A stretch of 64,000 nucleotides of DNA from Lepidodermella squamata (Eukaryota > Animalia > Gastrotricha): positions 310,001-374,000 of the forward strand of contig JBLDXI010000034.1 of assembly GCA_047495785.1 (NCBI GenBank), in the 5' to 3' direction. The notes under the pieces are model-generated. The model was not told where the DNA came from. It worked only from the letters and a program-made list of their open reading frames with translations, and ran no database searches. Positions 241-62,141 of this stretch are shown here, in pieces. Position numbers and translations under genes: made by a program. The first letter of the stretch is position 1. Each line of letters starts with the position of its first letter.

Positions 241-1257
241 GTTAGACCGGTTCCAGCGGAACCGCCAGTTTTTGTCCCGGTCAGACCAGTTCCGGATCCT
301 CAATTACCCGAATGGCCGGTTCCTGAGTGGCCTTCACCAGTTAGACCGCCAGTGGATCCTCCAGCCCCAGTCAGACCAGTCATAGGTAAGATTCGGCAAG
401 CTCAAATTAAATAACTAATTTTTTAATTTTTTTTTAATTGTAATTATTTTATTTTCTCAACAGTACTAGACCCGGAGCCGATTTCTGGTTCGATCCCAGT
501 ACCAATCCGACCGCAGCCTGGTAATGAAAGAAAATTTATTAAATTGGAAAAAATACGATTAAAATTGTTAATATATTTATTTTAACTGATTAATTCAATT
601 TTAATAGAAATTCCAACTGTTCCAATTCGTCCGCCGATTCCTGTACCAGCCGAGCCCCAACCTGTCCCACCTAAACCCGAAATCGGTATGTCCTACTTTT
701 TTTTAGAAAATTATGTTACAATACCATTGAATTTAGAATTTCAATTCCCGGGAGAACAGGGTGGCCAAATCTGGTACATGTTCGACAGGCCCGAAGTTTC
801 GGCGACAGATTTCCGACCGATTCAAACTTTCAATCCGAGACCGACCGGAATTTTCGATCGCCCGGTTCCAGTGCCAGAGTCACCCTGGTCCCAGCAGCCG
901 AGCCCTGTTTGGCAACCCCATCAATGGGAGCCAGCTCCGCGCCCAACGATCACCCACATCCCGATCCCAGGGCCCCCGGGTCCTCCGGGCAAGCAAGGCC
1001 CGCCCGGTAAACCGGGTCGGCTCACCGAGAAGCACCTCGACTACCTCGCTGAGAAGGTGTTTGAAATGTTCAGCAGCGATGATGATGACGATGATGAGGA
1101 TGAGTCGAGCGAGGAGGAAGAAAAACCTCGTCGTCACCGCAATCGAAAATCAAGGAAGCACCGAAAACGGCGAGAGGAGTCGAGTGATGAAGAGGAAAAT
1201 CGCCGTCGTCATCAACGCAATCGAAAATCGAGAAAGCACCAGAAATTGCGCCATTGA
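1..1257 (+). CDS. 5'-truncated Pro/Val-rich protein with short collagen segment and acidic/basic tail (exons ~1-385, 463-520, 608-685, 737-1257)
   Basis: Frame +1 encodes (VRPAPVPETPVP)n. GT-AG introns join it to the 688-1257 ORF, which has [17 protein letters not shown], then LTEKHLDYLAEKVFEMF, poly-D/E and a duplicated R/K/H-rich block. AATAAA at 1317. Confidence 0.8.
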
Positions 1258-1357: not shown

Positions 1358-4300
1358 ATGAGTGATTTTTTTATTTCGCTCATTTTTTACGGTATTATTT
1401 TGATTTATTCAACAACATGCGAGGCGCCGAATGAAATTCTTATTGGTTGGTTCGTTAGATTTAAATTTTTCAATTTTAAATTTTTCAAATTCTTTTCAAT
1501 TTCAGGGAAAATCGAGAATGAGACTAGCACTGATTTCTTTGGCCTGGGACCTGAGGATAAGAATTTAGGCACTTTAAAATTTCTAATCATTTTCGACTTC
1601 TCAAAATTGGAAAATTGAAATTTTTAATAAATTTATTTATTCAATTTCACACAGAAATTTTCGAAATTTTAAATTTCAAAGTCCTAAAAATTCCCAATTC
1701 TCCCAAAAATTATATTTTTAACATTTATCGTTATTTTTTTTAATTTCAGGGAGAATCGATAACGAGACTAGCGTTGATTTCTTTGGCCTTGGACCTGAGG
1801 ATAAATCGCTGCTGACCAAATTATTGAGACCTGTGAGTTCGCGACGGAAACAGCCGCGAAAAACGCACCATAAACATCATAAACATCGCGATATGCCGCC
1901 AGGTAACTTAGCTTGGCCTTGTAAATTTTCGAATTTTATTCAAATTTCTTACCAGGTTACCAAGCAGCAGGCACCAACGGAATGCCGCGCAAAACAGGTG
2001 AGCTTTTAAAATTAAAATTAAAATTTCTTATTTCAAGTTATTTATTCTCAAAAAGGGCTCGAATATTTTTGAAATTTATTTCACATTTATGCAGGCTACC
2101 CAGGTATTATTGGGATGCCGGGAAAAACAGGTAAGATTTTAAAATGAAATTATTCTTATTTTATTTCATTGTTATTCTCAAACAGGGCCGCTAGGTAATT
2201 TTTCTGATTTTGTGGAAGCTTTTTTAATAATTAATATTTAGGGTTACCTGGTTGCGACGGACGCACCGGTCCACCGGGGTCAAGAGGTCATTTTCATTTT
2301 TGCGAACCAAATTGATTATAGGTTTGAATTTCAGGTCGTGATGGCGTTCCTGGTGCTGACGGAACGCCCGGGAAGCCAGGGAAACCTGGTCAACCAGGAG
2401 CTGATGGGTTACCGGGACCCATGGGTTCCAGGGGTGCCACCGGGCCCCCAGGTGAGCAGGGACATGTCGGCGAAACAGGTTAATTTCAAATCGAAGCTCC
2501 TGAAATTAAAAAAAATTGAGTAGGCCAACCTGGTATCCAGGGACCACCGGGCGCTCCGGGTCCTAAGGGCGACATGGGTCACCCGGGTGCTGACGGTCAA
2601 ACTGGCGCTCAAGGTATTATTGCTTTTTTACGATTTATTGGTTGACGCGATGATTCTTAGGTCGAACTGGCCAATCGGGGTTGAATGGGCTCCCTGGCCA
2701 AGACGGTAGACCGGGTCATGACGGCAAACCCGGGAGAAATGGTGTTGATGGGAGCCCAGGGTCACCCGGGCGCCCTGGACAACCTGGCTCCCATGGCCAG
2801 ACAGGTGATCAAGGCGAGAAGGGAAATGAAGGCGAACCAGGTCGCGATGGCTCACCCGGTCGGAAGGGTGACATGGGTCATCCGGGAGCATCGGGCAACA
2901 ACGGGTCACCTGGAATCCCCGGTAGCCCTGGTGAAAAAGGTTAGAAAAACTTTTGCGACTCATCAAACATTTTTAAAGTTCATTTTTTTAAAGGAAGAGA
3001 CGGCCTGAAAGGTGATCGAGGCCCAAAGGGGCCCTCGGGTGAGACTGGCCCTGCCGGTATGCAAGGCATGCCTGGACCTCATGGGAAAAACGGCTGTATT
3101 GGTAGTTAATTGAGAAATTAATTCCACTTTGATTCTTGGTTTTTCAAAGGATCACCTGGTCACCCGGGTGCAACGGGACCCACGGGTAATCTGTCATTTT
3201 TTTTTTAATTTGATCATCCTAACTTTTTGATGTCCAGGAATGGCCGGCCAGCGTGGTAAAAACGGAGAACCCGGCCCGCCGGGTACGAAGGGTGATTCAG
3301 GGTTCCCTGGTCGACCCGGCATCAAAGGCGACCATGGAGAAAAGGGTGACTTGAGTAATTTGAGGAATGAATCGCCGTCTATTCTTTCCAGTTTAGGTTC
3401 CGAAGGCGCAGCTGGAAAACCCGGAGTAGATGGAAAAGCTGGCACAACGGGAGACAAGGGCCGCATGGGTGCTCCGGGTGCTCGAGGCTCCAAAGGTATG
3501 GATATTTTTTCAACTAAATTCGTTTTTCTCCCCTTCTTATCTTCATTCTTAGGTCACCCTGGTACAACTGGTATGGACGGTCACAAAGGAGCTCCAGGTC
3601 CCTTTGGGCCCACTGGACACCAGGGTTATTTTTTCATATGGTGCAAAGAATTGTTTCCTAGTCTTTTGTTTTAGGGATACAAGGCTCCATGGGACACCCC
3701 GGCGCCCCAGGTGCTAAGGGTGATCATGGTGACACTGGACCGCAGGGTCCTACGGGTCACAATGGATGTCCTGGTATAAGCAGTTAAATGGCTTTAAATG
3801 ACATTTGAATCTAATTGATTTGCTAATTAGGGCAGCCTGGGTTACAAGGGTTACCTGGTCCAACTGGCGCCACAGGCAGGCATGGCGATAAAGGTGACGC
3901 TGGAGAACCTGGTAAGACATTTGCCGTCTTGCTGAGGGAATCCTCATCATATCACTAGATTTCGATCCTTATAGGCAATCAAGGGTCAATCGGACAGACT
4001 GGTCAGTCGGGAGCTAAAGGCGACTATGGCGAGCCAGGTCACCCGGGTAAAAAGGGTGATCAAGGTGCGTGAAGGGTGAAATTATTTTTATCCTGTGTCA
4101 ACATTTATTTCAAACAGGTCACCCTGGTCGAGATGGCGAAAATGGGTTTCCAGGTCAATCCGGCCTTAACGGTTGGAATATTTTTTTGAGAAATCTGAAT
4201 ACGTTTTTCATTTTCCCTATAGGTCGCCCAGGTCAACCAGGTGCTAAGGGTGACAAAGGCAAAAAGGGCCGCAAGGGTAAGCAAGGGTTGGATGGAAAGC

Positions 4301-5199
4301 CCGGGCCGATGGGTTCGATAGGACTGCCGGGACCTGAAGGTCAAACTGGTCCGAAAGGGTCGACAGGTCCCAGAGGTCCCGGAGGTAGACGTGGGAAAAC
4401 GGGGCCAACCGGAGACACCGGGGAGCCAGGTCCACCTGGAAAAGATGGAGCTACAGGTAATGAATTTTTTTCCTCTTGAGAATTCAGGTTTTTTAATTTA
4501 ATTCGATAGGACTCAGAGGACATCATGGTCGCAAGGGTGATCGTGGCTCTGATGGTCACCCTGGGTTGCAGGGTTCTAAGGGTGATCGAGGTAAGCACCC
4601 TTTGTTTAGGGTTTAGGGTTTACCGATTATTTAAATTATTTCAAAGGGAATACTGGGTTGACCGGGCCAGCTGGCAAAAATGGTTGGCCGGGTGTCGATG
4701 GTCTTCCGGGTGTTACGGGTGCTAAGGGTGTCAAGGGTAAAAATGGTCAACCTGGTCGCGATGGCCTCCCTGGATACAAAGGTATTTATACCAATATTCT
4801 GGATTTCCGTTGTTATAATCGATTTAAAAAGGTGAGCCTGGTTTGCCTGGTTACGGATTCCCCGGCGCCCCGGGTGTCGGCATTCGAGGGCCCCGAGGCC
4901 ACAGGGGCAGAGATGGCCGGCCTGGTAAACGAGGCCGAACCGGCCCTCCGGGTCCGCCTGGCAAAGTCAGCATGAAAGATTTCCGAATAATGCTGCAAAT
5001 GTTCCTACGCGAAATTCGAGGGAACGCTGATCAGCCGCCGCCGTACCAACCTCAGCCGGGCCCATTTTGGCAATTTGAAGAGAGCTACGCGCAATGGCCG
5101 AAAAATAGCGGCGAATCGGCGGAAAATTCGGCCAGTTGCGAATCTCACGAAGTCAGAAAATCACACGTCAGAGATTTTGCAAGGAAAAAATTCCGATGA
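1358..5199 (+). CDS. Secreted collagen with many short phase-1 Gly-X-Y exons and a short C-terminal non-collagenous domain
   Basis: Signal peptide [23 protein letters not shown], a His/Lys-rich N-terminal stretch and continuous Gly-X-Y exons split G|GN by ~50-60 nt introns. Ends [27 protein letters not shown]...; AATAAA at ~5276. Confidence 0.9.
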
Positions 5200-5296: not shown

Positions 5297-8200
5297 TTAT
5301 TGAGCGTTTGAATCATCATTGGAATCTGAAAGATCCACCACAGAGGAGTTCGGCATTTCTACGGATTCCATTTCTTGTCGTTTCGAGAATGATGAGAAGA
5401 AATCGAGGGGCTTTTCGAAGGTAGGTTTTCCGCGCACTGAAACAACCATTGCGATCGTGACAAACTGGAGTTGATATCTAGATAAATAGATTAAATAATC
5501 AAAATTACCTTAAAAAATTTCCGTAAATTCCAAAAACAGGTAGAAATAATTCGAAATTATGAAAAATCGAGATAATTCAATCGGATTTTTTTTACGGAAA
5601 ATCTTACTCTGTGCCTTGAGATCCAGTGCCGAAAGTTCGCCTGCCAACGACGTGACCAATCCTGATATTTTTAACATCATTCAGAAAAGCGACTTTCCCC
5701 TGAAGTTGATTAACGTTCCCCTTCGCTGCATTGGCTTCAAAAGCCGCCAGACGTTCACCAGTATAGACCTCTTCATCCTCATCATCGGAAATTGGCGGAG
5801 ATTCAACGTCACGACCTGGTTTTTTCTTACGCTTCGATGAATCATTCTCGCTTTCTGAACCTTTATCACTATTCTCAGCGTCTTCATCGAATTGCTCCCG
5901 CAAGAAATCAGAATTGCTAGCGATTACCCGACGCGTGTAATTAAGGCGAGGAAAGGTCGACCGTTCCGGATCATAAACTTCAACCTGAAAAAAATCGAAT
6001 GCAAAAAATGAAAATTCCTCCTTAAAAATTATTTTGAAATAAAAATTTGACAATTCCTTCAACTCAAAATGATTCTACATCTTGCTTTGATCATCAATTT
6101 CATCGATTTTTTGCTGGCTTCCAATGAAGTAGTTTTCACTGGGGTGTTGGGCCAAGTCGATTTTACTAGTCTCCCCAACAACGAACGACTTTTTGTTACG
6201 GAACGGCCTGAAAATGAAAACTTCACTCTAGGTGCAATGAGTGGCCTTCAGACGCTTGCCTTCTTCCTAGACAAAGGCATAGCTTCGGGCATCAACACGA
6301 ACTTCACGATTCTGGTCGATATGACAATCGACGTTGTGAAGCGAGCGACAAGCGAACATCTTGGTCACCACAAATCATCGTATGTCATCAAGCCATCAGC
6401 AATTGTCGTGAGTTTCAGCCGGGGGATGTTCGCACAAGCGATAGAGGACAAGGATTGTCGAAGGGAAAACACGGTAGTTGGCGAGGCTACTGGGACAGCT
6501 GCTGAAATGTGGACTTTAGACCCTACAACAACCGGGGCGATTCTTTTGGCTGTGCCAAGCGCTGATCCTTACTACAACGAGCGATCTCTGTTATGGCCTA
6601 TCATTCTTCTGGCTGATAAGGGCGCTACTCTCCCGCTTCGTTGTGTTCGAGAGTCTTGGAAATGTAAAACGGATGTTTTGGGGGATTCCGGTGCGAAGAA
6701 GTCAGTTATTGCCGTCACTTCGCAGTTGAGGATTCGTTTGTCGGGGCCGGATTCGCAGCGAATTCGAGTTTTGGCTCATGCTGACAATCCTGATCGGGTT
6801 AGTAAGGTGTACGCAGCGATGGAAAAGCTGGCTGTTACTGAAGTCAACACGCAAGTGGCAGTTGACCAGCCTAAGTGCTTGAATCACGGCCAGGTATAGA
6901 TTTTCTTTCAAGTTTCCGGATTGTTTTCGGACAAAGGACGCAATGGTGTCCATGTAAATGTTTGCATACTTTCAGATAAGATGCAGTTACTCTTTCAACG
7001 TCAACCCACTTCGAAAAATCGGCCAATTCGCCTGCCAATTCAACAAACCAGGCCATTCAAACTTGTGGTGGCTCTGCAACGACTTCGGCCTTTACCCATC
7101 CCAGTACACTAACCAGATCACCGACGGCCGAATAATCGTCGCAATCTACGGCGATCCGCCCTACTACGAAGAAGAATGCATCGGCGTTTCGTCAAACTGG
7201 CTGCATTACAACGCATCGAGCGACCAGTTCTCCCAAGTTCCGACTAAGCACCTGAAGCATTCGCTAAATTCAGTGCAAATTACGCTAACAACAAGCAGTG
7301 ATATGTACAACGCTTATCGCTGTGTTGTGAAGACCAGGCAAACCACGGTTACGTTGAGGGAGTTCTACTACAACGCTGCGTCTCGATACGTATCAAAGTG
7401 CGAATTCCAATCGTCGGGTGTTTCTAGCTCGTCAAAGTCAGTAGCTAGTTCTGTTGAGGTAACTGGAGGTGAGAGTGCCCTTATCTATAGCACAAAATGC
7501 CAGCTAACGAAATCAGCCTCCCGTTTGAACCCATCAGTCCGAGCTTTTGCGTATCTTTCGAACGAAACAGAAAATGAATTCACCTTTCGATCGGAACCAA
7601 TCATTGAAGCTAACATGACAATCATACCAGGCGTTGATATGGAATTGGAAATTGGTATCTATTTCGACTCAAGTCAAGCTTTACTTGACCTAGCTCGAGA
7701 GAAACGAAGCCCGGTTCAGGCAGGTGGCCAACTTCAATATGGACCTATGAATATGATTGCGGAGATCTGGCTCCTTCTCGAAGGTGTTAGTGAAGTTCAC
7801 TTGAGGGTCCTAACACTTCCTATCACTTTTTATATCCCTGCAAATAGAGCTTTAGATCTAGAAGACTCGTCCAACTAGGATTGAATAAAGATGCACTTAC
7901 TTGAACGTAGACTGAAACGTTCGATTGAATCGACTCTTTGAAATACGTTTCAGCACTTCGTTTTGCGTGGTTGTCCTTCCCAAGGCCTTCGATAGTCACG
8001 AGGACAGGTACCAGGTCTACCTTGTAATTATTCACGGTCTTCAAAGCTGTCCATAAGCTTCGATCGATGCCCTTTAGAGAAAACGGGTCTATTTTAAGGC
8101 TGGGCATTGGATATCGATTTTGCACGAAGATTCCACAGCTTTTCTCATCCCAGCGAGACATTTTGAACAGTTGGCTAAAACCTGCTGTGATTTTCCTTTC

Positions 8201-10247
8201 GAATTCAATCAAACTTTTCTCGGTTGTTTTCAATTTTTCGACAACGTCCTTTGCTTCAGTGTCGATGAAAAGGTCGTAAACGAGTACGAGAAGAGCTCCG
8301 TCCAAAACTCGAGAAAACTCGTGTGGCCGATCGGCATAACAACAGAAAAACTGACATCTGGAAGTGCAAATGGGAAATATTCAAATAATATGGGAAAAAT
8401 CAGAAGATTAAATTGGACTTCTAAAATTCTTTTTAAATTTTAAAATTTCGCAAAATATTAAAAAGAAAAATACCTAAAATTATTTTGAAATATTTTCGAA
8501 ATTTTTAAAATTGATAAATGAAAGAATAATTATTTTTTGGAAATTAGCATTTTACCCAATTTCTCGAATTTCAATCACGCTCAATGTTCAATATCTGAAA
8601 TGTTTCGAAAATTTTGAATTTATACCTTCCAACATCTTCCGGAACTCCAATAGGTTCGAAGGACTGGCTTACTTTCCCGTAATGAGCCGTAAATTTCGCG
8701 CCGACAAAATCGCTCGGCAGAACTACGTACATGTAAGCAAACGGCTTCAGCCCAATAATTTGAGCCGGATTCTCCGAGTTGGAATGTTCTTCAATTTTCT
8801 CCGGGTGTTTGAAACCACTGCCAAACTGCAAGGCGATCATCCTATTAAGGCGGGCGGACATTTTCGGCGAAAATGGCGCCAAGACGCCACGGATTGAATC
8901 TAAGAGTCGACTTTTCGATGAATCACTTATCAGTTCTAACCAGCTTGTTGACTGAATTTCAAGCTGGGTTTTTGTGAAAAATACATTTTGACGGGAAAGG
9001 CCAAAAAGGAATGAAATAAACCAACCTTATCAATTGGAATATACCACGAATAGTTGAGTTCGTGATTCAGAACATTGATTTGATGGCCCATTTGAGGTTT
9101 AGCATTTAGGCCTGACGATATCGGAATATGCTAAAATTAAAAATTTGAAACAATTTTGGCGAAATTTAACTTTCGAAATGAAAATGAACGATCGCGATTT
9201 TTTTAGTAATTTATTTTGATTTTAGATAATTAATAAAAAAATATCCGGAAATTGAATCGGTAGTTTTGGCCATCGTATAATTAAAATTTGGTTAATTTAA
9301 ATTTAAATTTGACCTTGAAATTTTTTTAATTTTTTATTTCAATTTTCAAAATTTAAATCAAATTCAGAATTAAAAAAATATTAAAATTATTAGTTCAAAC
9401 CTCTGACAATGGATTAGTACATTTCCCAGATGTTTGGATTGCTTTTTTCACCGAAGCCGAGTCGCATGGGTACCTGAGACGTACTGGCGGCTGGGAGGTT
9501 GCCTCAGAACCAGCAGCTACCTCATCCTTACTGGCCGCAATCAAAATCGCCGGCGTAGAATCGATAACTCCCGAACATCGCAAATCGAATTCCGGCACTT
9601 CGCCAGTGTTCGCTGATTTTCGATTTCGAACTAGAAATTCGTTCAATTCATGGATCAGTTCCTTCTCAAGGCAAGCTATTTTTGACATGTTTCTTATTCG
9701 GATTCGTTTCTTAGCAGGACTGACAACGGCCTCTTCCGGAACTGGATCTGGTTGTTTTTCAGCCGCATAATTGTGAATTATTTGCTCGGGATTCTGCTCA
9801 CTGCTTGTCGATGGCTGGTTGATGGAGACAACATTGGGCCCTACGACGGGTCTATTGGCAAATTTTCCCAAAAAATGTTGATGAAGAGTTCGAACTAAAT
9901 CAACTGAAATAAAAAATTAATTTCATAATTTTAAAATTTATTTGGATTATTCTCAAATTTTCATTAAGTCCACCTTAATTTTTTTAATATTTTACTTGAA
10001 ATTTTGAGAATTCTTCGAGTGATTTTGTATGAATTCAGCATCGAATTTCGCCCGATTGAACTGAAAAATTATGTTTACCTCTGTACAGTGAAGTTTTCAG
10101 GCGCTGTCGTTTGGCTTCACTTACGAGGTCTTCTTTCTTGAAGAATTGAAAGGCGAACTTTCTATTGCCGCATTTCAGCCACGCGCTTTCGATTCGGCTG
10201 AGATTTTTGCGGTGAATGGGGCCAACACCCCGATAATGAGTTGTCAT
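5297..10247 (-). CDS. 2OG-Fe(II) oxygenase-like (prolyl-4-hydroxylase-like DSBH) protein with NLS-like motifs; 7 exons
   Basis: Exons ~10247-10079, 9903-9401, 9131-9027, 8964-8626, 8357-7901, 5984-5608 and 5477-5297 splice in frame. Motifs WYIPIDKLEIQSTSW, VVLPSDFVGAKF, YADRPHEFSRVLDGALLVLVYDL and NRYP..L....LKGID resemble a microbial-type 2OG-Fe(II) oxygenase family. Recognised by eye, not searched. Confidence 0.7.
6069..7878 (+). CDS. Nested antisense gene, ~575-aa secreted protein of unknown function (exons 6069-6893, 6976-7878)
   Basis: Signal-like N-terminus MILHLALIINFIDFLLAS. A phase-0 GT-AG intron joins two long ORFs; several N-x-S/T sites; AATAAA at 7884. Lies entirely in host intron 5985-7900. 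Confidence 0.75.
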
Positions 10248-11485
10248 GATTTATCCGAAATTAATCGCAATTAACGGCAAATAACCTAAAATATCAAAAC
10301 AAAGCAAAATGATGGGAAGTTGCTAGAAAATGCTGAGGATTTTTGATATAAGCTCAGAATTCAAGTGTTAGCATAAAATGGGGCACCAGTCGTTTCTTTG
10401 TGCAAGATGTTGCCCACGTAAGCAATAAAACCGGCCACCACACAACGCTAGTTGGCAATAAAAAAGAATGAATGACCTGACCCAATTGTGGTGACCCAGT
10501 TCACTATCACAATCACAATGGCGATTGTTTAGGCATATTTTTCGTTATAAACCGAACAATTTTTAAATTTTTGAAAAATGAAGGGGAAAATGAACCCGGT
10601 GTTATTAAAGCGGCGATCTTGAATGCAAAATAATATGGGAATTATTTTCCATTAACTTGGAATTTCTAAGAAAATAAAAAACCTAAAACTGAAATAACAC
10701 TTGATTCCCAACTTTTCTGTTATTTCGAAATTTTTTTATTCGCGAGGCCGCTGAATGTAAAAATAACCGCTAGAAATTACAGAAAGTGATTTTACACAAA
10801 AATCAGGGAATAATCGAGCAAGAGACGGGTTTTTCTTAATTTGTTTTTTTAATTCAAATGTTAAATTCCATTTCGCTTCTCCGACAAGTCGACCCTTTTC
10901 ACCTTTCACCTTTGTGCGCAATAAAAATGAATGACCTGACCCAATTGCGTTCACAATCATATTATAAAATAGGGCTATAATATCTGTCATGAATGTTTCA
11001 TCGTAATTTACCGACAAATTTGAAAATACCTAATATTTGAAAATATTTTTATAAAAATAGTCGAAAATCACTATATTTTAAATTCCTCGTCTAATGATTA
11101 ATTTATGCTCAATTTCTAAAAAACTAAAAATATATTACCTATAACACAAAAAATATCTTCGAAAATTCCCAAATCACTAATTTTTTTACTTAGATTTTTC
11201 ACGCTCAGGCATTCCGAGAATAGACGCATCATTTTATTCATTTTTATACTAATAATGATATAAGCATGTGGACGACGGAAAAACGGACGAGATCGTCAAT
11301 TCGAATATTTTCAACTTCGTTTTTAATTCATCAATGATGCGATTGAATTTTCATTTCGAAGGCGTCGTCGATAAGTCGCGATTGATAAATGCTAATTCTA
11401 ATTGCGTTAAACGATGAAATTTTCAAAAAACAAACTCAATCATCATTTGAATTATAAAATAATTTATCTTCAAAACTGACTCGTC

Positions 11486-14400
11486 ATGAGTAGCAGCGTG
11501 AGGTTCCAATTTGCGGCTATTATAATCATCGCGCTTTATTTGCTGACAAATGCCAAGAGCCAGGTAACCGTGGGTCCAGCGCCTGGAGCTACTGGTAAGT
11601 TTTATGCAGAAAATATTGTTTTAATTGTTTTTTTTTAAAGAGCAAAATTTTAATTATATTCCTTTCGTATTTTTAACAGGCCCAAAGGGCGAGCCGGGTG
11701 TCAAGGGTGACAAAGGCGACAAGGGTGACAAGGGAACAACTGGCGACAAGGGAGCTCCGGGTGTTCAAGGTTCAAAAGGCGATCCGGGTAAGTTATTTGT
11801 AATCCATATAGACAACAAGTTTTGAAGCTTTAATTCGTAATAAAAATGTTTGTACATGAATGAAAAATTAATTAAAAATAATAAAAATAATAAAAATTAA
11901 TTAAAATAATTAAAATTGAATTGAATTATGATAACTAATTCATCCCAAATATAAAACCATTTCTGATTTTTTGGTGTTATTAAATAATTTTGTAAAAAAA
12001 AATTTGCTCAGTTAATCCGCCAAAAATAACAGGAAAATATAAATTAATCAAAAATAATTAAAAATAATTCCCCAAGAATTACAGGAAAATCCCAGCTTAA
12101 TAATAGGTTTTTTTTGGCACCCATTGTTATAATTTTTAGGCAGCGAACCCTCTAGAACCTTCTGGACCTAATTATTTTATTTTCGAATTGTGAGTTTCAT
12201 AATCTTCAGTATTTTTTAATTTTTTATTGAAGGCGTCGATGGAGGCAAAGGCGACAAAGGCAACAAGGGAGATTTGGGACCGCAAGGCTCACAAGGCATA
12301 CAAGGCACCCAAGGCATACAAGGTGTGCAGGGTCCTGTTGGTTCCAAGGGTCAAAAAGGCGAACTGGGTGATATTGGATCAATTGGATCCATCGGCTCGA
12401 AGGGCTCTACCGGAGACAAGGGTGCCCAAGGTGATATGGGATCTATCGGCTCTATCGGCTCCGTTGGCCCAATCGGGTCAAAAGGTGACACGGGCGGTAA
12501 AGGATCAACTGGCGACAAGGGTGATCTAGGTGTTCCAGGTTCAAAAGGCGAACTGGGACCGCAGGGTACGATATTTCGAATCCATTTGAGACGGGCCCTA
12601 ATTTTCTTTGATACAAAACTAGGTTCGGCTGGAGCCGACGGAGCCGCTGGCTCGCAAGGTCTCAAAGGCGAAAAAGGTCAGTTTTCGAAATTCTCAATTG
12701 TTCTTTTCATAGTTTTCTGTTTTATTTATTCTATGTACTATTAAACAGGCGAGGTGGGCCTGCAAGGCTCAGCCGGAACTGATGGGATTGAAGGTGAGAT
12801 CAACTCTGCTCTCTTTTTATTTCTTATTCTGTTGAATTAATCCAGGAGCTCAGGGTGATACGGGTGATAAGGGTGACAAGGGTGATCAGGGCGAAATTGG
12901 CTCCATCGGGTCGATCGGCTCGAAAGGCTCCACCGGTGACAAAGGCGACCAAGGTGATGTTGGATCCATCGGCTCTATTGGTTCAAAGGGCGCCTCGGGT
13001 GACAAGGGCGACCAGGGTGATATTGGATCCATTGGATCCATCGGCTCGAAAGGCTCCGCCGGTGATAAAGGTGATCAGGGCGATATTGGATCAATCGGCT
13101 CTATTGGATCGAAGGGCTCCACGGGTGACAAGGGTGATCAAGGTGACATCGGCTCCATAGGATCTATCGGCTCGAAGGGTTCCACGGGTGATAAAGGCGA
13201 CCAAGGTGATATTGGATCAATCGGCTCTATGGGTTCGCAGGGCGCCACGGGTGACAAGGGTGATCAAGGTGACATCGGCTCCATGGGATCTATTGGCTCG
13301 AAGGGTTCCACCGGTGACAAAGGCGACCAAGGTGATATCGGTTCAATCGGATCGATCGGCTCGAAAGGTTCCACGGGTGACAAGGGTGATCAAGGCGATA
13401 TTGGATCGATCGGATCGATCGGCTCAAAGGGTTCCACCGGTGACAAAGGCGACCGTGGCACGGACGGCTCGAAGGGTGATCAGGGCGTTATTGGATCATT
13501 CGGATCCATCGGCTCGAAAGGCTCCACCGGTGACAAAGGTGACAAAGGCAACAAGGGTGATTTGGGACCGCAAGGCTCCCAGGGCATCCAAGGCGTCCAA
13601 GGCATCCAAGGTGTACAGGGTTCAATTGGTTCCAAGGGTCAAAAGGGCGAACTAGGTGATATTGGATCTATTGGCTCGAAAGGTTCAGCTGGCACAAACG
13701 GGTCGAAGGGTGACGATGGAGACAAAGGCGACAAAGGCAGCAAGGGTGATCTGGGACCGCAAGGCTCACAAGGCACCCAGGGCATCCAAGGTGTGCAGGG
13801 TTTCATTGGTTCCAAAGGCCAGAAAGGCGAACTGGGTGATATTGGATCTATTGGCTCGAAAGGTTCCGCTGGCACAAACGGTTCCAAAGGTGACGACGGA
13901 GACAAAGGCGACAAGGGCAGCAAGGGTGATTTGGGACCGATGGGCTCTCAAGGCATCCAAGGTGTGCAAGGTGCAATTGGTTCCAAGGGTCAAAAAGGCG
14001 ACCTAGGTAACGTCGGATCGATCGGATCTATTGGCTCGAAGGGCTCAACTGGTGACAAGGGTAACCAAGGTGATATCGGATCAATTGGATCAATCGGCTC
14101 AAAGGGCGCCACAGGCGATAAAGGCGATCAAGGTGATATTGGATCGATCGGCTCTATTGGCTCGAAAGGCTCCACTGGTGACAAGGGTGATCAGGGCGAT
14201 ATTGGATCAATCGGTTCCATCGGCTCAAAAGGTTCCACTGGTGACAAGGGTGATCAGGGCGATATTGGATCTGTCGGATCCATCGGTTCCAAGGGCGACA
14301 CGGGTGACAAAGGCGACAGTGGCACGGACGGCGCAAAGGGTGACAATGGTGTCCAAGGTGACATTGGCTCCATCGGCTCGAAAGGCTCAACTGGTGACAA

Positions 14401-15981
14401 GGGTGACAATGGCAATAAGGGTGATTTGGGACCGCAGGGCTCACAGGGCATCCAAGGCGTCCAAGGCATCCAAGGTGTGCAGGGGGTGATTGGATCCAAG
14501 GGTCAAAAAGGCGACCAAGGTGATATTGGTTCCATCGGATCTATTGGCTCGAAAGGTGCCGTTGGCACAAACGGTTCTAAAGGTGACGATGGAGACAAAG
14601 GTGACAAAGGCAGCAAAGGTGACTTGGGACCGCAAGGCTCACAAGGCATCCAAGGTGTGCAGGGTGCACTGGGTTCCAAGGGCCAAAAAGGCGAACTGGG
14701 TGATATTGGATCCATCGGCTCGAAGGGTTCAGCTGGCACAAACGGGTCGAAGGGTGATGACGGAGACAAGGGTGACAAAGGCAGTAAGGGCGACATGGGC
14801 TCACAAGGCATCCAAGGCATCCAGGGCATCCAAGGTGTGCAGGGTTCCATTGGTTCCAAGGGTCAAAAAGGAGAACTAGGTGATATTGGATCTATTGGCT
14901 CGAAAGGTTCCGCTGGAACGAACGGGACGAAAGGTGACGATGGAGACAAAGGCGACAAAGGCAGCAAGGGTGATTTGGGACCGCAAGGTTCTCAAGGTAT
15001 CCAGGGCATCCAGGGCATCCAAGGTGTACAGGGTTCCATTGGTTCCAAGGGTCAAAAAGGCGACCAAGGTGATATTGGATCAATTGGATCCATTGGTTCG
15101 AAGGGCTCCACTGGTGACAAAGGTGATCACGGTGACATTGGATCCATCGGATCCATCGGCTCGAAGGGCTCCTCGGGTGACAAGGGTGACCATGGGGACA
15201 TTGGCTCTATTGGTTCGAAAGGCGCTACTGGCGACAAAGGTACCCAAGGTGATATCGGTTCAATGGGATCCATCGGCTCGAAGGGTTCTATGGGCGACAA
15301 AGGAGATCAGGGTGATATTGGTTCAATGGGATCGATCGGCTCAAAGGGTTCCACTGGCGACAAAGGTGATCAGGGTGATATCGGATCCATCGGATCCATG
15401 GGTTCCAAGGGCGCCACCGGTGACAAAGGTGACAGTGGCACGGACGGCGCGAAGGGTGACAAGGGTGCAGCAGGCCTAAATGGTCTACAGGGTGCAAAGG
15501 GTGAATCGGGCGGTCAGGGCATCCAAGGTTCAGTCGGTTCGAAAGGTGACAAGGGTGATGTTGGCTCGAAGGGTGCGGATGGTCTTCCGGGTTTAGTTGG
15601 TCTATCTGGTTTGGCTGGGATCCTGGGCCCTCAAGGCTCGAAAGGCGACAAAGGATATAAAGGTAACCCTTTCGCCTTAATAATCGCCCGAATCACTCGG
15701 TACTTTTAAATTTGTACAGGTGATAAAGGTGACAAAGGATTGACTGGTCAAAAGGGCGAAATTGGTATTTTTTATTTAAAAAAAATATATAAATGTATTA
15801 TTGAACATGATTTATGAATATAGGTTTCGGTGTACCTGGTTACGGTTACCCTGGAATTCCTGGTCACCCTGGCAAACCTGGTCGGCCGGGTAAACCTGGC
15901 CGTGTTGACATTCCCAGACTTAAAGATATTTGTTCTGAATTATTCGCCGAACTTCTTTCTGAAAATTTGGAATCTAAATAA
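11486..15981 (+). CDS. Large secreted proline-poor collagen-like protein (~1,200 aa, GSK/GDK/GSI/GDQ triplets)
   Basis: Signal peptide [25 protein letters not shown]. About 8 exons, including one ~2.8-kb exon (~12847-15662) of uninterrupted Gly-X-Y. Ends [31 protein letters not shown]. Confidence 0.9.
12860..15460 (+). repeat. Coding higher-order repeat built from 63-bp (21-aa [21 protein letters not shown]) units interleaved with [12 protein letters not shown]...GQKGELGDI blocks
   Basis: Visible directly in the translation and DNA, with synonymous variation between units. Confidence 0.9.
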
Positions 15982-16443
15982 ATTTATATTTTCTTCACGT
16001 GAGTGATTAATTTGTTGGATGAAAATGGCCTGAGCCTCATTTTCAAAGTTCCTTTCAGGAAAAATAGCGACTTTCCCACCTTTATATTTCGGCGTATAGG
16101 GTCATTTTCGATGACAGCAGCGGCGATCTTATATAGGTTCCAATGATCGCCTTGTTATAAGCAAAATGCGAAAATTCGAAAAAATGCGTGAATAATTCTG
16201 TGGCTGTAATGGTGATAATCAAAATCAAAATCAAAATCGGAGAAAATTAATAAAGTGTTACGATTATGTGACATTTATAATCGTTGAAAATCATTACTAT
16301 TTTTCATCATAACGCAGTGATTAGGCCTCATAGATACTGAATTTTCTTTTTAAATTTTCTGGAATCAAAATGATCGGAAAATTTCAGGAGACTTTAATAG
16401 AGTGGCATATTTAGGCCCATTAAATTTGGTTCTGCTAAAATTG

Positions 16444-39074: not shown

Positions 39075-41363
39075 TAATTTTGGCTGCTTGAGTGTTTCGC
39101 TTAGAGATTAACCTGTTAATTATCATCAGCATAAACACTGACATGAACAGTTCTCAGCCAAATGCAAGGCTGTCTTATTACGGCAATCAAATGCGTCGAT
39201 GATGACTAGGAGATTCGTCAGGATTATCAGCATCATCTTCATTGCCGTGACATGCAGCTGCCTTCAACGAAGCGTCGCACCTTCGTTCCTTGTAGCATTC
39301 ACTTTGCCCTTGTTGGCGCGTAGTGCCTCTACCAACTCGACGTGGCCACGGCTGGCGGCAACATCCAGTGGCGTCGAGCCATAATTTGTGGCCCTATTCA
39401 CGTCGGCGTTGAACTCGCCAGCCAACATCCTCACCACCTCGACGTGGCCATTCTGGGCGGCGACGTACAGTGGAGTCGCGTCATTTATATTCGCAGAATC
39501 TACTTTCGCCTTGAACTCGCCAGCCAACATCCTCACCACCTCGACGTGGCCATTCTGGGCGGCGACGTACAGTGGAGTCGCGTCATCTATATTCGCAGAA
39601 TCTACTTTCGCCTTGAATTCGCCAGCCAACATCCTCACCACCACGACGTGGCCATTCTGGGCGGCCACGTGTATAGGCGTCCAGCCATCCTTATCGGCCC
39701 TATTCACGTCGGCGTTGAACCCGCCAGCCAACATCCTCACCACCTCGACGTGGCCATTGTAGGCGGCTGCAAACAGTGGAGTCGCGCCATCATTCATCGA
39801 AGAATCTACTTTCGCCTTGAACTCGCCAGCCAACATCCTCGCCACCTCGACGTGGTTGTTGAAGACGGCGATGTGCAATGGCGTCGCGCCCTTGGCATTA
39901 CGAACTTCTAGTTCCGCCTGAAATTGCTCGACCAGAGTCTTCACAATGTCGCTGTAGCCTTTCCGAGCAGCAAGGTACAACAGAGGACGCCCCTCGTCGT
40001 CTTTGCAATCAGGGCTAAGACCTAGGTCCCTGTTCAACAGCAATAGCACCAATTTCAACATGTCTTTCTGCCGACAAACGCAGTCAAATAGCTCCTGATA
40101 ATTAAAATTACTAACGCCTGAATGAATTGTAACATAATCCGTTGCTACCTTAACAGCCTCTTGGTTAGGTCGAACGAATGACTGGTCTGGCTGAAGAATG
40201 AAAGGGTTGATGCATCAAGGTTGCAACATTTTAGATGTTTACCTTTGTATACCGCATGGGTGCTGATTTCAATAGAAAACTGTGTTCTTGAAGCTGACTT
40301 GAGTTCGGTCGATTGTCAGGATTGACGGAAAGCATTGTCATGACAAATTCTCGGAATTCATCGGAATAGCCACGTGATTCGTCAAATGGTTTAAGGTTAT
40401 TACTACAATGTTATAGATTTCAGTCGGAGGACACTGTGTCAAACTGAAAATACCTCAAAATACCCGGCGAAGAGATGAACTGGAAAATTAGTTAAAACTC
40501 AGTAAGTATAACTCAGTCAAGATAATTCTCATACTGGTACATAGAAGTTGGCTAATTTGAAGAGCGCGAATCCCAACGACCAAACGTCACTTGCAGGGGA
40601 TTTCGGTCGACCGTTCAATACCTCTGGAGGTGAAGTGCTCCACTTAGCTAGAGCGTGTTGGCCACTGTTTTCGGCATCTAACTTATTTCTTATTAAAAGC
40701 TCATTTTCCAACTTACATTTCCAATTTCTCAATGATTCCCAAATCAGCTAGTTTCGATGTGCTACGGTCTGCCGTCAAAAGTACATTGCTTGTAGTTATA
40801 TTTAGATGAACGATATTTCGGTCGTGAAGATAAGCTAAAGCAGGTACGAGTTGGCGGGACCATATTTGAAGCATAATTTCCGGGATGGGTCTAGTCTCAG
40901 GTGTGATCAGGCTTTCGAAGCTTCCTCCCCCGCAAAACTCCATCACCAAATATCTCATCATGCAGTTGCGAGAAGAAGAATCATCACCGGAATATGTCTC
41001 TATAGTTGGAATATTATTAAGAAGAACTAAGAGGAGTAGAGCATTACCTTCGAAAGCGCCGAACACTTTGACAATGTTTGCATGGCTGATATCGACCATC
41101 AACAAATCCTGAGATTTGAAAATATGACATGAATTATTGTGGTTATGGCGAAAACTCACTCTTTCGTGGAGAAGTTCAGCAATTTTGTCGAAGTGTTTTT
41201 CGAAAGTCTTGCGAAGGGTTGTCAAGTTGGTTTCTTTGATAACCACTTGCTGTTGATCACGCCCGTTACGTTTGCACAACATAGGTTGTCGAAGGCCGCC
41301 ATAACGCAAGACTTTACCAACAGTGAACTCCGACATAGATCGAGGATAATTTCTTGGTTCCAT
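39075..41363 (-). CDS. Pseudokinase-ankyrin repeat protein, copy A (C-terminus frameshifted at ~39270; possibly decaying)
   Basis: VVIKE, YLVMEFCGGGS, IVHLNITTSNVLL, KLADLG, PPE, SDVWSLG, then 34-aa ANK repeats. The tail aligns to copy B only across frameshifts. Confidence 0.8.
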
Positions 41364-41812
41364 ATTCAATCCGAAGCTAAAAATAATGGAAAGGAAGTAA
41401 AATTTGCCCTTGGGAATTAGAAAAGAGGAGAAAAGCATCACTACAAAAGGAACCTATTTCTTCAAAGTGGTGATAAGAAATCGGAGATACCGCGGTGGCT
41501 CGTCATATCATATCTGCCAGAAACACGCTGAAACGCGCATTAATATTTGTACACCAATCTCTGGGCGAGGTTTGCCGGCAATATTGAGACCTCTTGCTAT
41601 CTTTATGTTTACGACCTTATTCATCTTGCACCTCCATAGAGTGAAAACGGAAGTATTATGTTTGAATGAAAGATGAACTGCCCTCATGGTGTGGCAAGAG
41701 TCATTTCAAGTTTTCGGAAATCAAAATCGCAGAAGTTTATTATTCAAGATAACTCGATAAATCAATCAAAAATTCGAGTTGAGTCAGTTCTCTCAAAATT
41801 TTCCCTTTGCTC

Positions 41813-42415: not shown

Positions 42416-43722
42416 TCAAGGAGCTTTGATAAGTTTGCCGTACTTCGCCAAGAACTGATCAAAGTTCATGAGTTTCGGGTTCAGCTTTTTCGTAGCTTCG
42501 AAATCGCGGCTAGCAGTCAATGGCTCGGAGAAATCCTGGTAAAACTGGAACATGTTCGCCATATCAGCCGCGCCAGGAAACGGCAAGTTCCGGAAAACTT
42601 CGATAGGAGTAGGCTGGTACAGAATCTCCTCACCTAGAACCTTACCAACCTTCTCAGCTTGCTCGCTCATCGTCATGGTTTCACTGGCAATCGCAACTCG
42701 CTTACCAATCCAAGTTGGGTCTTGGAAGATTCCGTAAGCACATCGTCCAATATCGTCCACGGCCATTCCAGGCGTTTTGACGTGCCCCATCGGCGCCGTG
42801 ATCATCAATTTACCATCCTGACCACGATGCATCGCGACCATGCCGGTACAGAAGTTGTCCCAAAATCCCGGGGTTACCATAAAGGTAACAGGCTGGCCGT
42901 CGAAGAATTTGTCGGAGCCAGCTTTAGTCTCGCAGAATGGTACTTTGTACTTGCCGTGCAATGTTGGCAATCGATCGTCGTTAAGAGGTCCAAACTTGTG
43001 CGGGTCATCCAACGTAGACCAGATAACATGCTTGATCCCAGCTTTCCTACAAAAATAGGATAGGATAGGATAAGATAGGGCAGATAGGATAAATGGTCAC
43101 ACTTCGCTAGTTTGTATTTAATAATTTTTCAAATTTGTTTATTTAAATTGAAGGAGATGCAATGGATCGCTTGAATTTCATTACTGAAACTTATCCCGGG
43201 AGGGTTTTACTTCTTGCGAATTTCGTATTCTGTTGTATAACTTTTTTTAAATCATTTTAATTTATTTCCGTTTTAATTTGGGTTTTAGGGCTTTTTTTCA
43301 AGAGAATAGAATAGGATTCCATTTTCTAAGGACATGGCAGAAAGTATGCTTCAACTTGCCTCGCCGCGTTAGCCATAGACTTGATTTGTGTAGTTTCTTT
43401 CTCGGGGTCAGCCCAATCGATGACCGAAACGCAAAACAAGCCATACGAGCCTTTGATAGCCTCGGCCAACGCGTCCTCGTCATTAGCGTCGACCTGGACG
43501 ACTTCGACACCCTGCTCAGTCAAGGCCTTTGCTTTCGCCGAATTTACGTCTCGGGTTAAAGCACGAGCCTTGAATTCGGTAGTAGGATCTTCCAAAATTG
43601 CTCGAACAACAGAGCCACCCTTCAGAAAATGAATATAATATATAAAGTAGCTCTGAAGGTTGCTACTTTACCTGTTGTCCAGTTGCTCCTACAACAGAAA
43701 TGATTTTCTTGTCAGATGCCAT
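42416..43722 (-). CDS. NmrA-like (NMRAL1/HSCARG-type atypical SDR) protein, copy A; 3 exons
   Basis: MASDKKIISVVGATGQQ|GGSVVRAIL...RALTRD...GIKHVIWSTL...VDDIGRCA...MFQFY. Intron 2 is GC-AG. Confidence 0.9.
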
Positions 43723-50996: not shown

Positions 50997-52241
50997 TTAA
51001 GGAGCTTTGATAAGCTTGCCGTACTTCGCCAGAAACTGATCAAAGCTCATGAGTTTCGGGTTCAGCTTCTTCGTAGATTCGTAATCGATGCTAGCATTGA
51101 ATTTCTCTGTGAAATCTTGGTAAAACTGGAAAATGCTCGCCAGTTCACCCGCACCAGGAAACGGAAAGGTCCGGAAAACCTCGATAGGTGTAGGTTGGTA
51201 CACAATCTCCTCACCTAGAACCTTGCCAACCTTCTCAGCTTGCTCGCTGACAGTCATCGATTCACTAGCAATCGCAATTCGCCTGCCAATCCAAGTCGGG
51301 TCTTTGAAAGCTCCGTAAGCACAACGACCGATATCGTCTACGGCCATGCCAGGCGTTCTGACATTCCCCAACGGCGTTGTGATCGCCAATTTACCATCTT
51401 GGCCACGATGCATTGGTTCCAAGCCGGTGCAGAAGTTGTCCCAAAATCTTGGTGCTATCAGAAACGTGACAGGCTGACCATCGAAAAATTTGTCAGAGCC
51501 AGCTTTGGTCTCGCAGAATGGTATTTTGTATTTGCCATGCAAAGTAGGAAATCGATCGTCGCTGAGTTGTCCAAATTTGTGAGGGTCGTCCAGGGTAGAC
51601 CAGACAACATGCTTGATCTCAGCTTTCCTAAAAAAACAGGGTTATCACAAATCACTATTTTTTATGCATTCATTTTTTCAAAAGGAGAACAATAAAGCGT
51701 TTGAATTTTAATAATTAATTCGAGTTTAAGTAATTGAGGAATTTCTGAAAAATCTTCAAAAATCATATCATTTTGTTTCGATTTCAATTTGGCGATCTTT
51801 CAGCGTATATATTTTCAGATCGAAAGTACTTTTGTTTGAATGCTTTCTTAGGACAAGAAGGAATATTTTTCAACTTGCCTTGCCGCGTTAGCCATGGACC
51901 TGATCTGGGCTATTTCTTTCTCAGGATCAGTAAAATCAACAACCGAGACGCAAAACAAGCCATAAGAGCCTTTGATAGCCGCAGCCAACGCGTCCTCATC
52001 ATTAGCATCGACCTGAGCGAGTTCGACGCCTTGCTCAGCCATAGCCTTGGCTTTCGCGGAGTTGACATCTCGGGTTAAAGCTCGAGCCTTGAAATCGGTG
52101 ACAGGATCCTCCAAAATCGCCCGAATAACAGAAGCGCCCTTCAAAAATTCAACAAATTACAACTATAATCTCAAAATGTTGATGATTCACCTGTTGGCCA
52201 GTTGCTCCTACAACAGAGATTATTTTCTTTCCAGATGCCAT
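50997..52241 (-). CDS. NmrA-like protein, copy B; 3 exons
   Basis: MASGKKIISVVGATGQQ|GASVIRAIL...; highly similar to copy A with the same introns. Confidence 0.9.
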
Positions 52242-57449: not shown

Positions 57450-58646
57450 ATGGCACCTGAAAAGAAAATCATTTCTGTTGTAGGAGCAACTGGACAACAG
57501 GTAAACCATCGAAATTCTAAGATTTTTCCTGAAGTTTGTTCAATTTCTGAAGGGTGGATCTGTTGTTCGAGCGATTTTGGAGGATCCTGCCACCGAATTC
57601 AAGGCTCGAGCTCTAACTCGCGATGCCAACTCAGCGAAAGCCAAGGCCCTGGCGGAGCAAGGTGTCGAAGTCGTTCAGGTCGATGCTAATGACGAGGACG
57701 CGTTGGCTGAGGCTATCAAAGGCTCGTATGGATTGTTTTGCGTTTCGGTAATCGACTGGACCGATCCAGATAAAGAAATCGCACAGATCAAGTCGATGGC
57801 TAACGCGGCAAAGCAAGTTGAAAAATAATTTCCTACCTTGTCCTAGGAATAATAATCCAGGCTCAAACGCTTTAATATTGTCATTCTATAAAAATCCTAC
57901 AAAGAAATTGAAGATATTTTATTTGTCTGTATTTTAGGAAAGCTAGAATCAAACATGTTATTTGGTCTACCTTGGATGACCCTCGCAAATTTGGACCGCT
58001 AAGCGACGATCATTATCCAACTTTGCACGGCAAGTACAAAGTAACGCATTGCGAGACGAAAGCTGGATCTGACAAATTCTTCGATGGCCAGCCTGTTACC
58101 TATCTGATAACCCCAGCATTTTGGGACAACTTCTATACTGGCTTTTTCCCAATGCATCGCGGCCAGAATGGTAAATTGATTATCACAGTCCCAATGGGGC
58201 ATGTTAAAACGCCTGGCATGGCCGTAGACGATATTGGTCGTTGTGCTTACGGAATTTTCAAAGACCCAACTTGGATTGGCAAGCGAATTGCAATTGCTAG
58301 TGAATCGATGACGGTCAGCGAGCAAGCGGAGAAAATTGGCAAAGTTCTAGGTGAGGAGGTTGTGTACCAGCCTGCGCCTTTCGAAGTTTTCCGGAACTTG
58401 CCGTTTCCTGGTGCTGGCGAATTGGCAAACATGTTTCAGTTTTGCCAGGATTTCTCCGAGAAATTGAATGCTAGCCGCGAAGCTACGAAGACGCTGAACC
58501 CGAAACTCATGAACTTTGATCAGTTTCTGGCGAAGTACCTACGGCAAACTTATCAAAGCTCCTTGAAGACCTTGGGAACATCGGGAAAATTGACTCTTTC
58601 GACACTTCGGTTCGGATATAAGGGAAACTCCTTGAATAATCACTAA
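57450..58646 (+). CDS. NmrA-like protein, copy C (4-nt insertion near the end gives an altered, extended C-terminus)
   Basis: MAPEKKIISVVGATGQQ with the same introns. aagtacctacggcaaa versus aagtacggcaaa bypasses the ancestral stop at ~58566. Confidence 0.85.
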
Positions 58647-62000: not shown

Positions 62001-62141
62001 ACGAAATTCCAAGCAAACATCGCTGTCTTAGATCGCCGTAATAAGACAGCCTTGCATTGGGCCACGATCTGCGATAAAAGTGTTTCTGCTGATGACAAGC
62101 GCAAGACTATCGAAATACTCGAGCGGCCAAAATTAAACTAG
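59096..62141 (+). CDS. Pseudokinase-ankyrin repeat protein, copy B (apparently intact, 7 exons)
   Basis: Kinase-fold exons (VVIKE, IVHRNITTSNVLL, KLADLG, APE, SDVWSLG, VNPDDRP) splice in frame into the 429-aa ORF with about 10-11 ANK repeats. Confidence 0.85.
59329..59723. mobile_element. 395-bp MITE with perfect 30-bp TIRs and 8-bp TSD (P-element/hAT-like) in intron 1 of kinase copy B
   Basis: tattttgg-CATGAGACGTACTATAGGACGCCGCGGCTT...AAGCCGCGGCGTCCTATAGTACGTCTCATG-tattttgg; absent from copy A. Confidence 0.92.

Follow-up and report, generated by a model that had tools for sequence, protein, structure and literature searches.

A long, nearly proline-free collagen gene in the genome of the gastrotrich Lepidodermella squamata

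We analysed a window of 64,000 nucleotides from the gastrotrich Lepidodermella squamata (GenBank assembly GCA_047495785.1, contig JBLDXI010000034.1, positions 310,001 to 374,000, forward strand), and describe here a proline-poor collagen gene, gene C, that occupies positions 11486-15981 of the window on the plus strand (all coordinates below are those of the window). We think it rather likely that gene C is a real animal gene, maintained by selection, for a secreted collagen chain with a signal-peptide-like start, and that this chain would form a triple helix of about 326 nm dependent on neither proline (Pro) nor hydroxyproline (Hyp). The electrostatic, Hyp-independent collagen design has been known so far from bacteria and viruses; with gene C it seems to occur in an animal.

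Residues 34-1173 of the gene C product are 380 consecutive Gly-X-Y triplets without interruption; counting 0.286 nm for each residue, their length comes to about 326 nm. Glycine (Gly) has been lost at none of the 380. Six triplets account for 53% of them: GSK (51), GSI (48), GDK (47), GDI (24), GDQ (17) and GIQ (16). Pro fills only 17 of the 760 X and Y positions (2.2%), 12 of these in X (3.2%) and 5 in Y (1.3%); eight of the 17 belong to GPQ triplets, and most of the others lie close to the ends of the helix. This triplet count upholds the first-pass annotation of the stretch, which had reported more than 350 triplets dominated by the same six, with Pro nearly confined to X-position GPQ and the termini: gene C encodes a near-Pro-free collagen. 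The X positions are occupied mainly by Ser (37%) and Asp (31%), and the Y positions by Lys (32%), Ile (21%) and Gln (19%); the overall composition includes 10.3% Lys and 10.7% Asp. In human fibrillar collagens, by comparison, Pro takes 31% of X and 34% of Y positions (PMC8968730). Gene C thus lacks the high imino acid content of typical animal collagens, in which Y-position Pro, at about 30% per position, serves as hydroxylation substrate. Pfam Collagen (PF01391) matches exon 6, which holds most of the helix, with E 5e-142 and 462 bits against a cut-off of 27.2. Toward both ends of the product Pfam found no family besides Collagen, and no COLFI C-propeptide (PF01410). A polyglycine-II bundle, which had been offered as an alternative fold, is without support, since Gly recurs exactly every third residue over 1,140 residues, as a triple helix requires, and not in a GGX pattern.

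Lys-Gly-Asp/Glu (K-G-D/E) junctions occur at 70 of the 379 steps between triplets (18.5%), or about one for every five triplets. Shuffling the triplets 2,000 times gave an expectation of 40.9 +/- 4.4 with a maximum of 56, so that the observed count stands at z ~6.6. In collagens as a whole, junctions of this type account for 3-6% of triplets, a share that reaches 13% (KGD) in viral ones; their proposed function is that of clamps which keep the helix from unfolding locally while it zips up from C to N (PMC11923368). Host-guest peptides gain 15-17 C in melting temperature (Tm) from KGE or KGD, and bacterial Scl2 helices, which lack Hyp, have a Tm of 36-39 C when longer than 150 residues (PMC7824840). 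Scl2.28, low in Pro and high in Lys and Asp, has a Tm of 35.6 C, falling to 24.2 C at acid pH (PMC8968730). Both these papers on KGD/KGE (PMC7824840; PMC11923368) and the excess of junctions in gene C agree with the earlier suggestion that such pairs stabilise helices devoid of Hyp. Local charge is balanced along the helix, ranging from -5 to +2 net per 20 triplets on a triplet-level map. That map was taken in place of a residue-exact stagger score for fibril packing, which proved uninformative since every Lys stands in Y and every Asp in X.

Tandem Repeats Finder resolved the helix of gene C into a 63-bp (21-residue) unit and a 180-bp (60-residue) super-unit, with DNA identities of 64-86%; a 21-residue unit overlain by a longer super-repeat had already been noticed in the first reading. 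We call these the A and B units. After a mixed N-terminal part come A-block 1, with ten 21-residue units (12872..13501; period 63, also followed on the triplet map), and B-block 1, with three units of about 60 residues that each carry an N-G-S sequon (13502..14050; period 180). The remaining blocks were delimited from the Tandem Repeats Finder output together with unit lists: A-block 2 has four to five 21-residue units (14051..14341), B-block 2 about four units of about 60 residues (14342..15112), and A-block 3 about five units of 18-21 residues (15113..15421), which lead into a mixed C-terminal part. The B units are of a Gln/Ile/Lys type, and all five N-G-S/T sequons of gene C lie in them, at a common position of the unit.

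Comparison of the units with one another gives evidence of purifying selection. Among 16 A units the proportion of synonymous differences (pS) is 0.62, near saturation, while that of nonsynonymous differences (pN) is 0.049; for 18 unfiltered register windows of the A type the values are 0.64 and 0.147 (ratio 0.23), and for seven B units 0.45 and 0.089. The repeat copies are old in their DNA and strongly conserved as protein. No exact repeat inside exon 6 is longer than 42 bp, and of its 2,787 31-mers 2,725 are unique, so that the array is not an assembly expansion. Because synonymous sites are near-saturated, the protein is conserved and exact repeats are so short, we take gene C for an old, selected gene and not for an assembly artefact.

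The gene model was built from a three-frame translation of 11300-16200 together with the raw sequence, and has eight exons and seven introns, all on the plus strand; splicing leaves a single open frame of 1,222 residues. Exon 1 (11486..11594) contains the start codon, the signal-peptide-like N-terminus with a putative cleavage before KSQ, and the first triplets, and ends at a G|gtaagt donor. Exon 2 (11680..11787; 108 bp) encodes triplets with moderate Pro and is bounded by ag|G...G|gtaagt in phase 1. Exon 3 (12233..12565; 333 bp) encodes one B-like and two A-like units and matches Pfam Collagen with E 9e-17. Exon 4 (12623..12676; 54 bp), exon 5 (12749..12793; 45 bp) and exon 7 (15720..15764; 45 bp) come from the spliced model. 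Between the last two lies exon 6 (12846..15662; 2,817 bp), whose 313 triplets are the repeat-bearing bulk of the helix, and exon 8 (15824..15981) closes the gene. The introns are short AT-rich gaps at which the collagen triplets switch frame. All seven are GT-AG introns in phase 1, each cutting a Gly codon between its first and second base, and exons 2-7, which lie wholly inside the triple-helix region, each have a length that is a multiple of 9 bp. Retention of intron 5 or of intron 6 would lead to a stop; intron 2 contains an AT-rich simple repeat (11861-11909). The ATG is preceded by an in-frame stop three codons upstream. By eye, a basic n-region can be made out at the N-terminus, followed by a hydrophobic core of 12 residues and a putative TNA|K cleavage site, and some ten non-collagen residues separate this putative signal peptide from the collagen part. 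The GC content at third codon positions (GC3) is 0.485, and both GC3 and codon usage are similar to those of neighbouring genes. An AATAAA that overlaps the stop codon (15977..15982) is, from its sequence, the likely polyadenylation signal. An Rfam scan of 12000-64000 found no match.

In the C-terminal exon the main helix is followed by two one-residue breaks, G-F-G and G-Y-G, by six consecutive G-X-P triplets (15844..15897), and by a 25-residue tail that runs to the stop codon. The G-X-P run is the only cluster of Y-position Pro in gene C and is a candidate for a hydroxylated folding nucleus. Within the tail is a 21-residue amphipathic helix (15910..15972) containing the only Cys of the whole product, Cys1207; AlphaFold2, given the C-terminal exon, predicts it over residues 29-49 of the input with a predicted local distance difference test score (pLDDT) of 85-95, and we regard it as a candidate trimerisation helix. 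A PDB sequence search with exon 8 including its triplets had as best matches the collagen IX NC2 constructs 5ctd and 5cva (E 2.6e-4), and in this weak match the gene C Cys aligns to the disulfide Cys of alpha1/alpha3(IX). In the NC2 domain three helices bundle together, which trimerises the chains and sets their register (PMC12562938). The gene C tail may work like NC2 or like a collectin neck, as an analogy and not as a demonstrated homology.

These features suggest how the protein might fold and assemble. Three gene C chains would be joined by their C-terminal helices as a three-helix bundle, as in collagen IX NC2 or the collectin neck, and Cys1207 may connect two of the three. The adjacent G-X-P run, probably G-X-Hyp in the mature protein, would then start nucleation of the triple helix, which would zip up towards the N-terminus; zippering should be fast, as hardly any prolyl bond has to isomerise between cis and trans. 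Some 70 interchain Lys-Asp/Glu salt bridges per chain, or roughly one per five triplets, would stabilise the finished rod. On the Brodsky host-guest scale, Ile and Gln rank with the better residues other than imino acids for the Y position, and in gene C they probably add stability. In a homotrimer each GDI-GSI-GSI stretch would make a hydrophobic band of about 2.6 nm, and bands that are charged but locally neutral would alternate with these at a 6-nm period. Such an alternation would favour lateral association of the rods into a fibre, sheet or gel with fine banding. The abundant Lys and Gln residues and the five conserved sequons offer candidate sites for cross-linking and glycosylation. The material might serve as a matrix, a sheath, an egg coat or an adhesive; a silk, glue or eggshell-type material, or a rod heavily modified at Lys and Ser, had been proposed in the first reading.

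Several points weigh against this reading. The triple helix, the composition of the trimer, its hydroxylation and its stability are all deduced from sequence. The residue found most often in X is Ser, which is no strong helix former. Searches of sequencing runs for RNA led to only one holder of the sequence, of DNA type and probably the source assembly. The terminal helix used alone had no PDB match at E <= 10, and a profile built from three tails, those of gene C and of the neighbouring collagen genes A and B described below, had no NC2 match; for these two reasons we dropped homology of the tail with NC2 and treat the likeness as an analogy.

The first alternative, which we hold to be unlikely, is that the protein has no stable long triple helix in vivo. 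Only its C-terminal end would trimerise, and the Pro-poor region would be a flexible polyampholyte arm, similar to gelatin, within a hydrogel, a coacervate adhesive or a mucus-like coat. The dominance of Ser in X would fit such an arm, as would an imino acid content of 2.2% of X and Y positions, far under the ~31-34% per position of human collagens (PMC8968730). The conservation of Gly tells against it: Gly stands at 380 of 380 third positions despite saturated synonymous sites, and only the tight packing of a triple helix demands that. The enrichment of K-G-D/E at z ~6.6 would likewise be relevant only between the chains of a helix, and bacterial helices with low Pro and high Lys and Asp do hold together up to about 35 C.

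Gene C is not the only collagen gene in the window. Gene B (2241-5199, plus strand), which lies 7 kb upstream, is a conventional collagen rich in Pro (30% in Y and 13% in X) and split into at least 16 small exons; like those of gene C, its introns are in phase 1 and split Gly codons. Its last exon, of 123 residues, has G1G breaks, Pro-rich triplets, a predicted helix straight after the last triplet, and a Pro/Gln-rich tail. Gene A is represented by its last exon (688-1257, plus strand), in which a Pro-rich non-collagen segment is followed by only about six GPP-type triplets, a helix comparable to those of genes B and C, and then acidic and basic tails in the form of a poly-Asp/Glu run and Arg/Lys-rich repeats; this tail has a weak NC2 match (E 0.024). 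The three tails can be aligned gap-free at their hydrophobic positions, in register with the last Gly, so that the design of the C-terminal exon of gene C is common to its two neighbours. Because genes A and B end alike and gene B has the same intron phase, the simplest reading makes gene C the tandem relative of a conventional collagen. Its most likely origin, as far as the sequences indicate, is tandem duplication of the neighbouring conventional collagen with repeat expansion inside one exon, and gene B is likely to be a sister of the ancestral type.

Could gene C instead supply one chain of a heterotrimer, together with other Pro-poor chains encoded elsewhere in the genome, with the block pattern serving to register the chains? 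We give this a low probability. NC2-type helices do select chains in collagen IX (PMC12562938), and a single Cys per chain makes no symmetric disulfide knot in a homotrimer. The two neighbours that share the tail nevertheless differ greatly in helix length and no length-matched partner was seen; moreover, K-G-D/E pairs function in a homotrimer.

Searches for relatives of gene C found none that is specific. A word-indexed protein search with the 938 amino acids of exon 6 returned no orthologue, only generic or phage and bacterial collagen-like matches of 36-45% identity at best. A 188-residue piece spanning A and B units, used to look for fragments, matched only generic and microbial collagens at up to 56% identity and with partial coverage. 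An exhaustive search of 1.84 billion representatives gave best identities of 42-54% and no protein with the GSIGS/GDKGD signature, none of the 80 microbial-type loci returned by a JGI metagenome locus scan had GSIGS, and a look-up of the exact product returned nothing. About 33% of the 42-56% identities is accounted for by Gly. ESM Atlas features place gene C nearest to bacterial collagen clusters (0.92) with low recognition, and are uninformative. Literature searches found no paper on a Pro-poor full-length animal collagen. Pro-poor collagens rich in GDK and GDQ are common among the database matches from bacteria, phages and giant viruses, and the predicted gene C product appears to be a convergence on this microbial and viral collagen chemistry.

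One of the microbial or viral open reading frames, on metagenome contig Ga0208492_1000204 (match at 6001-9408), has about 388 triplets that are nearly pure GDK/GDQ. Its Y positions are 55% Lys and 42% Gln, its X positions are 54% Asp, and Pro is at about 1%, an extreme design of salt bridges only.

The abundance of such proteins in microbial and viral data raises the alternative that the repeat region was captured from a bacterium, a phage or a giant virus and grafted into an animal collagen gene, the more so as the language-model features lie closest to bacterial collagen clusters and the window also holds NmrA-like genes with bacterial best matches. We judge such a transfer improbable, because gene C and gene B have the intron phase and the C-terminal exon in common, codons are host-like, and similarity is nowhere specific. 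The rule of exon lengths in multiples of 9 bp is likewise common to both genes, GC3 is host-like along with codon usage, and the small flanking exons are intermediate in composition; no match rises above the generic collagen level of 42-56%, some 33% of it Gly, or includes GSIGS. That gene C is an unexpressed relic or an assembly artefact, as the want of an orthologue in protein and metagenome searches and of an RNA run might suggest, is very improbable given a 1,222-codon frame intact through seven canonical introns, a pN/pS of 0.08-0.2 among repeat copies that are 14-36% apart in DNA, exact repeats of at most 42 bp, and an AATAAA at the stop codon.

Among known systems, the streptococcal proteins Scl1 and Scl2 and other bacterial and viral collagen-like proteins resemble gene C in composition: they are rich in Lys and Asp and make a helix free of Hyp, in which K-G-D/E bridges and polar hydration replace it. 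Gene C differs from the Scl type in having introns and a putative animal-type secretion signal, and in being without an N-terminal V domain and a cell-wall anchor. Its 380 triplets compare with about 80 in Scl2, and its X-position Pro is far below the 19-31% of typical bacterial collagens. The Ile-rich hydrophobic bands and the C-terminal G-X-P run with its helix also set it apart, and there is no specific sequence similarity.

The best-known animal collagens free of Hyp are the silk collagens SfC A-C of the sawfly Nematus oligospilus (PMC3790195), which are lineage-restricted and form a secreted material. They have 60-62 triplets with much Pro, mostly in X (PMC3790195), in contrast to 380 triplets and 3.2% X-position Pro in gene C, and they end in Gly-rich non-collagen sequence that is different from the gene C termini. 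FACIT collagens (type IX and others) have a short helix straight after a Pro-rich collagen end, as is predicted for gene C. Gene C lacks the COL1 segment with its Cys motif and the NC1 that follow this helix in FACITs, stopping directly after it, and it has no TSPN or vWA head, no interruption in the main helix and only a single Cys.

Fibrillar collagens (I-III, V and XI) resemble gene C in their one long unbroken helix (about 338 against 380 triplets, or about 300 against 326 nm), and in exons of 45, 54 and 108 bp. They zip from C to N starting at a Hyp-rich C-terminal end, as is proposed here for gene C. Unlike them, gene C has neither a COLFI C-propeptide nor an N-propeptide, its introns split Gly codons, its Pro content is 2% against about 32% per X or Y position, and most of its helix is in one 2.8-kb exon. 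The term "giant", used at first for the gene C collagen, is apt only in part: the protein is long, but the helix exceeds that of a vertebrate fibrillar collagen by merely ~12%.

The rest of the window contains three NmrA/HSCARG-like genes (Pfam PF05368), at 42416-43012 (minus strand), 50997-51542 (minus strand) and 57972-58646 (plus strand). One of these copies was searched, and its best matches were all bacterial or metagenomic, with identities of about 49% (Terrimicrobiaceae, Chitinophagaceae); by sequence it is a candidate for a gene that was acquired horizontally and then amplified. There are also long and highly regular ankyrin-repeat arrays at 39264-40061 (minus strand) and 60852-62141 (plus strand), with kinase-like open reading frames near them (40713-41441); the regularity of the repeats gives rise to long antisense open reading frames.

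A fuller account, which we put forward tentatively and think somewhat less probable than not, is that an animal lineage evolved a collagen of fibrillar size without Pro or Hyp along its helix, starting from an ordinary Pro-rich collagen and proceeding by expansion of one exon. Hyp would be kept only in a six-triplet C-terminal nucleus next to a trimerising helix, stability would come from a salt-bridge clamp about every five triplets and from beta-branched Y residues, and the 6-nm bands would program lateral assembly. If this is true, the gene C product is a block-copolymer collagen of natural origin. It should be quick to fold and could be produced in bacteria without prolyl hydroxylase, and it would be an attractive template for recombinant collagen materials. 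Hyp is usually seen as the key stabiliser of animal collagen, and the known exceptions are either small, as is the Pro-rich sawfly silk, or microbial. A 326-nm collagen with 2% Pro would demonstrate for an animal that a helix of fibrillar length can be carried by the electrostatic "folding code" (PMC11923368), and gene C would serve as a natural test of how folding rate relates to prolyl isomerisation. With gene B only 7 kb away, the locus would also offer a clear case of a collagen rebuilt through repeat expansion.

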